A model generated the notes under the pieces. It was not told the origin of the DNA, ran no database searches, and saw nothing but the letters and a program-made list of their open reading frames with translations. Shown one piece after another: positions 49,058 to 50,624 of a stretch of 64,000 nucleotides of DNA. Source of the DNA: Blastocladiella emersonii ATCC 22665 (taxonomy: Eukaryota > Fungi > Blastocladiomycota); NCBI GenBank assembly GCA_025594325.1, contig JANHCV010000003.1, forward strand, positions 310,001 to 374,000, read 5' to 3'. Within the stretch, counting starts at the first letter, position 1. Every line of letters starts with the position of its first letter. The position numbers and the translations under genes are program-made.

Positions 49058-49063
49058 TATAAG
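49058..49063 (+). promoter_or_regulatory. TATA-like element
   Basis: TATAAG in a GC-rich context about 150 nt upstream of the LPMO-like ATG. Confidence 0.45.
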
Positions 49064-49206
49064 ACGCGGCCATCGCCCTCGTCCTCCCCCGCTGCCCTCG
49101 ACAACGAAACACCTCCCAACCAACACCATCAACACTCTTCGAGTGCCGTCGTAGACCGACCGACCTTTAGAAGAACCTGCTAGACAGACCCTGACCCTCC
49201 ACCACT

Positions 49207-50076
49207 ATGATCTCCTCGCCGCTCCGCATCGCGCTCCTGGTTCAGCTGGCCCTGATCCTCGCCGCGCTCTCCCCGACCGCGGACGCGCACTTCACGCTGC
49301 AGTCGCCCGTCGCGTCGCGCGAGAAGCAAGAGTACCCGAACGACAACCGGCGGTACTGGCCGATCGCGGGCGGGTCGACGCTGCGCCCGGTCCTCGACTG
49401 CCTCAAGCTGCCCCGCCGCCAGGTCGCGACGCTCGCCGCGGGCTCGACGCAGGTGTTCGGGTTCGAGATCGGCAACAACGCGCGCCACGTCGGGCCCTGC
49501 ACCGCGCAGCTCATCAACCTCAAGACGGGCGCGACCCAGGACATTGGGAAGGAGGAGAACTGCGTCAACCGCCGCGACGCCATGACCGTCAAGCTCCCGT
49601 CGACCACGTGCGACGAGTGCGTCGTCAAGATCAAGGTCACGGCGACCCACCTCGGCGCTAACTTCCCCGAGTTCTACGACTCGTGCGTCGACGTCAAGCT
49701 GACCGGCGGCAGCGGCACCGCGCCCGGCCCCAACCCGCCCGCGCCCGTCCCGACGGACGTCGACCCGGCCCCGTCGCCCTCGCCCTCGCCTCGCCCCAAC
49801 CCGCGCCCGCGCCCGCCCCGTCCGACGGCTACCCGCAACCCGGGCAAGGGCCAGCAGGACCCGACGCCCACGTCCGCGCCGATCCCGCAGCCTCCCTCGA
49901 ACGGCGGTAACGGCGACAACGGGTCGTGCTCGGCGGCCAACCACGGCCAGATGGTGTGCGGCGCCGGCGGCAAGACGATCCGCCAGTGCGTCTTCGACAA
50001 GTGGGTCGACATCCCCGTCGCCGCCGGCACCAAGTGCGTGCCCAGCGGGAACACGGTGCAGCTCGCGCGGGCGTGA
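49207..50076 (+). CDS. Secreted histidine-brace LPMO-like protein with a Pro-rich linker and a C-terminal CBM19/X278-like module
   Basis: The signal peptide ends A-D-A, leaving His28 as the mature N-terminus. His94 lies in HVGPC, followed by H148..E155-F-Y157..C. After a Pro/Thr linker comes a 4-Cys module (C..GQMVC..IRQC..W..VAAGTKC). Intronless. Confidence 0.8.
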   Translation: MISSPLRIALLVQLALILAALSPTADAHFTLQSPVASREKQEYPNDNRRYWPIAGGSTLRPVLDCLKLPRRQVATLAAGSTQVFGFEIGNNARHVGPCTAQLINLKTGATQDIGKEENCVNRRDAMTVKLPSTTCDECVVKIKVTATHLGANFPEFYDSCVDVKLTGGSGTAPGPNPPAPVPTDVDPAPSPSPSPRPNPRPRPPRPTATRNPGKGQQDPTPTSAPIPQPPSNGGNGDNGSCSAANHGQMVCGAGGKTIRQCVFDKWVDIPVAAGTKCVPSGNTVQLARA

Positions 50077-50624
50077 GCGCGCAGTGGGTGGATGTAGCAG
50101 TAAACAATGAAAGCAGTGCTTTGTGAATTTGCGGGGAGATTTCAGGGGTGGAGAGGAGGTGAAGCGAGTGAGGGCGGGCTGGACCGTGCGGTCGAGACCC
50201 GCGGCACGACGCGTCAGAGGAATGTGATCACGTCGTATCAGTGATAGGCGTCGACGCTTATCACGGAGGAATCGATGAGGGCCAGAGTCATGCTTCAAGC
50301 TTCTCGAACTTAGTCGTAGGCTCCAGCGTCCGCGACCAGTTGAAGCGGCCACGGCTGCTCTGATCCGTCAAGGTGAACCACGCACACATCACAGGCATGA
50401 GCGCGACGTTGGCCAGTACCTCAAACCACATGCTACCCTATAACAAGGTTACGAGCCAGAACCGCAAAACAGGAGATGCTCGACTCAACGCGTCGATCAC
50501 TCCACGTGAGCTCAGCCGATGGGCGCGACGCGCGTCGCTCAGCTGTCATCCGCGCGCGATCCTGCTCTTGCTCTTGAACTCCACCCTCACTTATTGCAAC
50601 GTATCAACGACTGGCTGCATTAAC

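Follow-up and report, generated by a model that had tools for sequence, protein, structure and literature searches.

The gene at positions 49207–50076 of a 64-kb window (the whole stretch of DNA analyzed) from Blastocladiella emersonii ATCC 22665 raises the question of whether its product is a copper LPMO and, if so, to which family the protein belongs and which polysaccharide it would target. The open reading frame, as read from the DNA, starts with an ATG on the + strand and encodes 289 amino acids followed by a stop codon. The frame is colinear with its orthologues from the initial methionine to the last residue and needs no splicing, and the gene is thus intronless, as the original prediction had stated. 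The TATA-like element of that prediction is also present as TATAAG. The sequence has a G+C content of 66–72%. The GC3 value of the coding sequence is 0.97, and its GC1/GC2 pattern is also similar to that of neighboring native genes. An antisense open reading frame (49180–50352; 390 amino acids) was considered and rejected as a consequence of the high G+C content, because the + frame exhibits the GC3 value of 0.97 and has conserved orthologues. On both sides lie common housekeeping genes of eukaryotes, with PSP1 upstream, TAF12-like and EMC2-like genes farther out on the same side, and a gene for a Skp1-POZ protein (Skp1-like) downstream. The window contains a single copy of the family, the 49207–50076 gene. 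The gene and the parts of its product are arranged as follows.

49058–49063, + strand: TATAAG, a putative TATA-like element read directly from the DNA, 149 nt upstream of the ATG
49207–50076, + strand: coding sequence for a signal peptide, an LPMO domain, a linker and a Cys module, with no intron
49207–49287, + strand: predicted signal peptide, residues 1–27, with Arg7 in the n-region, a hydrophobic core and the c-region P-T-A-D-A
49288–49722, + strand: compact LPMO catalytic domain, residues 28–172 (145 residues), with six conserved cysteines
49723–49911, + strand: Pro/Thr/Ser-rich low-complexity linker, residues 173–235, assigned from the sequence
49912–50073, + strand: C-terminal four-Cys β module, residues 236–289, CBM19-like and with a predicted fold of the CBM14 type

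The predicted signal peptide ends with A25-D26-A27 and is followed by H28-F-T-L-Q-S-P. Cleavage would occur after Ala27, as judged from the -3/-1 rule and from conservation within the family. The residue that precedes the first histidine (position -1) is alanine, glycine or cysteine in all 37 homologues that have a presequence, and position -3 is occupied by a small or aliphatic residue in nearly all of them. The catalytic domain is connected to the C-terminal module via the linker, which differs in length and sequence between orthologues. The C-terminal module contains four cysteines (Cys241, Cys251, Cys261 and Cys277), the last of which lies within A-A-G-T-K-C277. The polypeptide terminates in Leu-Ala-Arg-Ala and contains no hydrophobic GPI signal at its C-terminus.

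The N-terminal domain was modeled using AlphaFold2 with a mean pLDDT of 92. A Foldseek search with this model yielded 69 matches at E≤1e-3, and all of those listed are LPMOs. Structural alignment using VIA-align gave Z values of 10–12.6 to AA10, AA15, AA13, AA16, AA11 and AA9 structures. Nearly all of the LPMO structural alignments begin at residue 28, which corresponds to residue 1 of the mature protein, and a few AA9 rows begin at residue 27. In a search independent of Foldseek, the best 24 of 48,161 PDB chains are all LPMOs or LPMO-like proteins, with X325 (Z 8.8, 11% identity) and AA14 (Z 8.6) at the bottom of this block.

At the sequence level, AA9 (PF03443) is the sole Pfam LPMO model that the protein touches. 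The AA9 match is below the cutoff (21.7 versus 27.8 bits, E 2e-4) and spans the C-terminal third only (residues 118–173). LPMO_10 (PF03067), the model of the AA10/AA15 type, gave no match to the protein at E≤10. The NCBIfam model SCE4755 (NF043005) of bacterial 'polysaccharide monooxygenase-like' proteins scores 23.2 bits, below its cutoff of 75, and matches 19 of the 53 family members. Phmmer, run exhaustively against 1.84 billion representatives, retrieved only 63 relatives. Among 54 aligned family members, 20 match Pfam AA9 (best E 3.6e-17) and 11 match LPMO_10. Several of the distant outer relatives score above the curated Pfam thresholds and thereby provide a transitive link from the family to the curated LPMO families. 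Moreover, the family profile matches only LPMOs among solved structures, with E values of 1e-6 to 2e-8. The profile of the catalytic domain gives 32.4 bits to the AA11 enzyme AfAA11A (7p3u), 32.0 bits to the AA15 enzyme TdAA15A (5msz), 29.7 bits to AA16 (7ze9) and 27.1 bits to AA9. The E value for AfAA11A is 1.9e-8 with the untrimmed alignment and 9.8e-7 with the catalytic domains alone. On this evidence, the 49207–50076 protein is very probably a histidine-brace protein of the LPMO fold.

The predicted active site comprises four elements, which were assigned by alignment to solved LPMOs.

49288–49290, + strand: codon of His28 (mature His1), the predicted first brace histidine, which aligns with the first residue of LPMOs of known structure
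49486–49488, + strand: codon of His94 (mature His67) in A-x-H-V-G-P-C, the predicted second brace histidine
49648–49650, + strand: codon of His148 (mature His121), a third histidine of the AA9 type, predicted in the second sphere
49669–49677, + strand: codons of Glu155-Phe156-Tyr157 (mature E128 and Y130), the predicted second-sphere glutamate and axial tyrosine

The second-histidine motif reads H94-V-G-P-C98, and the third histidine and the tyrosine are located in the stretch A146-T-H148-LGANFP-E155-F-Y157-D-S-C160. All of the motifs listed in the original prediction occur in the 289-residue protein at the residues to which they had been assigned. Conservation was counted over 53 catalytic domains of the family. 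His1 is invariant (53/53), the position of Tyr157 is tyrosine or phenylalanine in every domain (53/53), and the glutamate is conserved in 51, the second histidine in 50 and the third histidine in 43 of the 53 domains. The motif pattern is far beyond chance, given this conservation and the exclusive occupation of the top of the fold search by LPMOs. Three environmental members of the clade described below have lost the second histidine, which indicates that not all clade members would be catalytic.

In the family profile, His94 aligns with the brace-histidine motifs of AfAA11A, TdAA15A, AA16 and AA9; the second brace histidine of TdAA15A is His91 (PMC5823890). E155-x-Y157 aligns with R-E-L-Y of AA11, Q-E-E-Y of AA15 and A-Q-N-Y of AA9. 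His148 aligns with the histidine of the AA9 'A-L-H' motif and with a gap in AA11 (AfAA11A). Among AA9, AA10 and AA11, the tyrosine and glutamate pair is unique to AA11, and the third histidine of AA9 is missing from AA11 (PMC12186267). The second sphere predicted from these alignments is thus a hybrid that combines an AA11-like tyrosine and glutamate with an AA9-type third histidine. The signature is mixed throughout the domain: A-x-H is found as in AA10, AA11 and AA15, H-x-G-P and the third histidine as in AA9, and the tyrosine and glutamate as in AA11, and the C-x-x-C motif and other cysteine positions are common to AA15. The LPMO-fold model and the residue-level alignments therefore support the original prediction of a histidine-brace protein of the LPMO type whose signature is mixed.

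The C-terminal module is borderline CBM19 by sequence, and its predicted fold resembles those of CBM14-type chitin binders. The Pfam CBM_19 model (PF03427, cutoff 20.1) gives 20.2 bits for the module alone and 19.7 bits in the context of the full protein. With the isolated tail as the query, a word-indexed search retrieved only the Blastocladiella britannica orthologue, and an iterative HMM search gathered homologous modules from 19 family members. CBM_19 matches seven of these 19 modules (E≤1), and CBM_14 weakly matches two. Sequence comparison of the tail with the PDB produced chance-level matches only, and the structural comparison is therefore one with distant folds. The AlphaFold2 model of the tail (pLDDT 81.6) contains five short strands. 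Foldseek matched it to PAFC and the Penicillium bubble protein with TM values of about 0.6, and superposition on CBM14-type binders and on PAFC and the bubble protein aligned 47–54 residues with rmsd values of 2.1–2.5. A wide VIA search returned 23 chains at Z≥2, with Z at most 4.9, and such low absolute values are expected for a module of about 50 residues. Six of the ten best VIA matches are chitin-binding domains, namely, Der p 23, two Avr4 structures (one with a bound chitin hexasaccharide), Blo t 12, the CBM14 of chitotriosidase and tachycitin. The tail differs from CBM14 in that it has four cysteines, compared with the six typical of CBM14, and its scores are marginal. A chitin-binding-type fold of the modeled tail thus has moderate support. 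The chitin-binding-type tail of the original prediction agrees with the at-threshold CBM_19 score and with the enrichment of chitin binders in the fold search, and chitin binding itself is a prediction.

The protein is most closely related to annotated proteins from Blastocladiella britannica, Sorochytrium, Catenaria and B. emersonii ATCC 22665. In a maximum-likelihood tree of the 53 family catalytic domains, 39 representatives form a clade with support of 100/99 on a branch of length 0.71. H-F-T-L ... S-R-E marks this clade, which contains several old paralogue lineages. Its named members come from Blastocladiomycota (Blastocladiella, with three B. emersonii paralogues, Catenaria, Allomyces, Coelomomyces, Paraphysoderma and Sorochytrium) and Sanchytriomycota (Sanchytrium and Amoeboradix) only. 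Blastocladiomycota and Sanchytriomycota are sister phyla (PMC8371127), and the named members thus fall within one organismal clade. The outer relatives start with H-G-[YFW] and are found in the chytrids Gaertneriomyces and Borealophlyctis, in the holozoan Syssomonas and in a few bacteria. They carry other carbohydrate-binding modules, CBM1 in Borealophlyctis and LysM in Syssomonas. A profile search of a large protein database with the catalytic domain yielded few further named relatives.

None of the named LPMO families that were tested accommodates the 49207–50076 protein, which is therefore a promising candidate for a new family. The original prediction had suggested that the protein lies outside the ordinary membership of the known families, and this holds: the AA9 score is below the threshold, LPMO_10 and the BIM1-like model do not match, and the families are nearly equidistant. 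The profile scores for AA11, AA15, AA16 and AA9 lie within approximately 5 bits. Sequence identity to LPMO structures is about 16–24%, with approximately 19% being typical, and the structural Z values of six AA families lie within about two units, with none standing out. The 145-residue domain ranks with the shortest LPMO cores of the match lists. AA18 is reportedly listed among the LPMO families as well, with credit to Santos et al. 2025.

The strongest alternative is that the protein is a distant but ordinary member of AA11 or AA15, which would emerge once curated CAZy/dbCAN models are applied; this alternative is a matter of classification and not of function. AA11 (AfAA11A, 7p3u; AoAA11, 4mai; AfAA11B; N. 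crassa CWR-1) is the best sequence-profile match of the family and shares with it the axial tyrosine and second-sphere glutamate, a hallmark of AA11 (PMC12186267), as well as A-x-H and a C-x-D-V strand past the tyrosine. The similarity extends to the overall layout, which parallels the architecture of X278-bearing AA11 enzymes: a signal peptide, a PMO domain, a disordered linker and a small putative chitin-binding module (PMC9550227). Chitin would also be the likely substrate of AA11 and of the 49207–50076 protein alike. However, the Z values to AA11 (10.8–11.2) are no better than those to other families at approximately 19% identity. Moreover, the catalytic domain is far shorter than in AA11, the third histidine has no equivalent in AA11, whose second sphere has tyrosine and glutamate with asparagine, and the linker is Pro-rich, in contrast to the Gly/Ser-rich linker of AA11. 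AA15 provides the top structural match (TdAA15A; Z 12.5, rmsd 3.2, 136 residues) and shares A-x-H, E-x-Y, C-x-x-C in the strand before the third-histidine position and further cysteine positions. AA15 nevertheless contains two long insertions relative to the 49207–50076 protein and lacks the third histidine, its profile score is no better than that of AA11, and reports of AA15 concern animals, algae and oomycetes but not fungi (PMC5823890). AA9 shares H-x-G-P around the second histidine and the third histidine in A-x-H upstream of the tyrosine, but Glu155 replaces the glutamine of AA9 and the domain is approximately 80 residues shorter.

The UniRef automatic name of the Catenaria orthologue, 'Chitin-binding type-4 domain-containing protein', also speaks for an existing assignment and indicates that the LPMO-likeness was already known to databases. 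A 2019 survey of zoosporic fungi records two AA11 in a single table column, and its text names only Rozella allomycis (PMC6690862). Beyond this survey, the literature search found no paper in the library covered that ties LPMOs or histidine-brace proteins to Blastocladiella, Blastocladiomycota or sanchytrids. Given the near-equal profile scores, identities and Z values across the families, the AA9-type third histidine and the long, fully supported branch of the clade, ordinary membership in AA11 or AA15 is unlikely. The protein is of a known kind, an LPMO, and represents a lineage-specific and apparently undescribed variant of that kind, whose second sphere is a hybrid.

Copper binding without clear cleavage of a polysaccharide occurs in some LPMO-like families (X325 and the debated AA14 and AA16 cases). 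The protein could be a noncatalytic X325/Bim1-type protein whose brace serves to acquire copper or to store it in association with the wall. Like the X325/Bim1 proteins, it is a small secreted protein of a fungus with a histidine brace and a comparable β-sandwich, and the domain is very compact, as is that of X325. The original prediction had taken the H-F-x-L N-terminus as a cue for X325/Bim1, X325 is among the structural matches, and an embedding search, useful as a lead only (score 0.84), pointed to clusters whose members have LPMO_10 and BIM1-like domains. The cue is not borne out by the remaining evidence. The BIM1-like model (PF20238) matches neither the protein at E≤10 nor any of the 54 family members at E≤0.01, and X325 ranks structurally beneath all of the catalytic families. 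The protein ends in a folded Cys module, in contrast to GPI-anchored Bim1, and X325 has an aspartate carboxylate at the fourth copper position (PMC10952591), whereas nothing in the 49207–50076 sequence points to an aspartate as a fourth copper ligand. In addition, the second-sphere glutamate and axial tyrosine of LPMOs are conserved in the family, and a carbohydrate-binding-type tail suits an enzyme that works on a polymer. The X325/Bim1 reading was rejected on the basis of the missing Pfam match, the lower structural rank and the lack of a GPI-type C-terminus, and we regard it as improbable, somewhat more so than ordinary AA11 or AA15 membership.

The horizontal origin that the original prediction had allowed for, such as acquisition from bacteria with SCE4755-type LPMO-like proteins, is highly improbable: the weak SCE4755 similarity, the few bacterial sequences among the distant relatives and the lack of an intron are outweighed by the native codon usage and native neighbors, the restriction of the named clade members to two sister fungal phyla with old paralogue lineages, the position of the bacterial sequences outside the 39-member clade in the tree that includes them, and a search with the core motifs that gave pattern matches in prokaryotic genomes but no relative among 185,579 prokaryotic species (bacterial and archaeal, one genome each).

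The reading that we favor, with somewhat better than even confidence, is that of a secreted copper LPMO of a divergent family, tethered to a putative chitin-binding module and predicted to target chitin, most plausibly that of the organism's own wall. Signal peptidase would cut after Ala27 and thereby place His28 at the N-terminus. Based on the alignment and the predicted fold, the amino group and imidazole of His28 would form, together with His94, the T-shaped brace that holds the copper ion. Tyr157 is placed by the alignment at the axial position, and Glu155 and His148 in the second sphere, where they may position H2O2 or O2. By analogy with LPMOs in general, reduction of Cu(II) to Cu(I) would be followed by C1 or C4 oxidation of a crystalline polysaccharide and chain breakage. 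The flexible Pro-rich linker would tether the small disulfide-bonded β module and thus direct the enzyme to chitin. The chitin would be that of the organism's own wall during germination, growth or zoospore discharge, or that of chitinous detritus; this choice of substrate draws only on the tail and on the chitin wall of the organism.

AA15 enzymes function in the remodeling of endogenous chitin in animals. More tentatively, and with less than even confidence, the 39-member clade may represent a new AA family that is ancestral to Blastocladiomycota and Sanchytriomycota, with a minimal 145-residue core and a Tyr-Glu-His second sphere undescribed for AA9, AA10 and AA11. Such a family would perhaps be a fungal counterpart of animal AA15 that remodels the organism's own chitin wall instead of digesting biomass.

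The characterization of new LPMO families has time and again broadened what is known of the substrates, taxonomic distribution and biological functions of these copper enzymes, as illustrated by the role of AA15 in animal development (PMC5823890) and of AA11 in the control of cell fusion in Neurospora (PMC9550227). The clade has one of the smallest natural LPMO cores. Recent mutational work identifies second-sphere residues as determinants of redox potential, oxidase activity and peroxygenase stability (PMC12186267), and the clade, which mixes the residues named in that work, constitutes a natural experiment on them. Many of the named clade members carry a chitin-binding-type tail. Blastocladiella is a classic developmental model, and the combination of chitin-walled zoosporic fungi, the only source of named members, and chitin-binding-type tails makes a role of LPMOs in fungal wall remodeling testable in this organism.

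The coding frame of the LPMO-like protein on the plus strand is accompanied by two further features of the DNA:

49180-50352, minus strand, antisense ORF of 390 aa that spans the entire studied gene
50074-50130, A/T-richer stretch just 3' of the stop codon, with G-T-A-A-A-C-A-A-T-G-A-A-A-G around 50100-50113

Because the plus frame of the gene exhibits a GC3 of 0.97 and has conserved orthologues, we take the antisense ORF to be a by-product of high G+C. The A/T-richer stretch could be the polyadenylation region.

B. emersonii contains at least two further paralogues of the family, P0007 (H9P43_003272) and P0018 (H9P43_004785). P0007, which is located beyond the window on a contig that, like the one carrying the studied gene, is 2.64 Mb long, retains the catalytic domain, and its alignment with orthologues reveals a basic Cys-free stretch at the C-terminus in place of the Cys module. 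This stretch could represent a frameshift or a mis-called tail.

The catalytic residues are altered in part of the core clade. In the alignment of 53 catalytic domains, three environmental core-clade members lack the second copper-binding His of the brace, with L, L and R in that column, and the Glu residue is replaced by Gln in two core-clade members. In P0039, the second brace His, the Glu and the third His are all lost. By their position in the tree, the three altered members are most likely the P0039/P0040/P0045 group, of which P0039 alone is individually displayed in the alignment, and this group is likely to be a non-catalytic offshoot of the core clade. Two other core-clade homologues, P0033 and P0036, may be adjacent paralogues sharing one environmental contig; they are candidate neighbours because they are sisters in the tree (support 100/99) and the longest source contig is 23,015 bp for both (JGI).

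Among the outer relatives, CBM1 is present in P0047 from the chytrid Borealophlyctis and LysM in P0050 from the holozoan Syssomonas; the LPMO-like catalytic scaffold is therefore joined to different targeting modules. In the P0048 cluster of distant relatives (16 metagenomic members, 422 aa), the LPMO-like domain is fused to TPR repeats. Some fragments of this cluster, which is presumably bacterial, bear the database name TadD/PilF, and P0048 forms one group in the tree with a Candidatus Accumulibacter protein.

The CBM19-like tail of the studied protein (49912-50073, plus strand) is weakly similar in sequence to bubble protein/PAFC, and its predicted fold resembles the same proteins with a TM of about 0.6 (PDB 6trm / 1uoy). 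The tail also resembles CBM14 chitin binders. Together, these likenesses hint that CBM19, CBM14 and antifungals of the bubble-protein type are structurally related.
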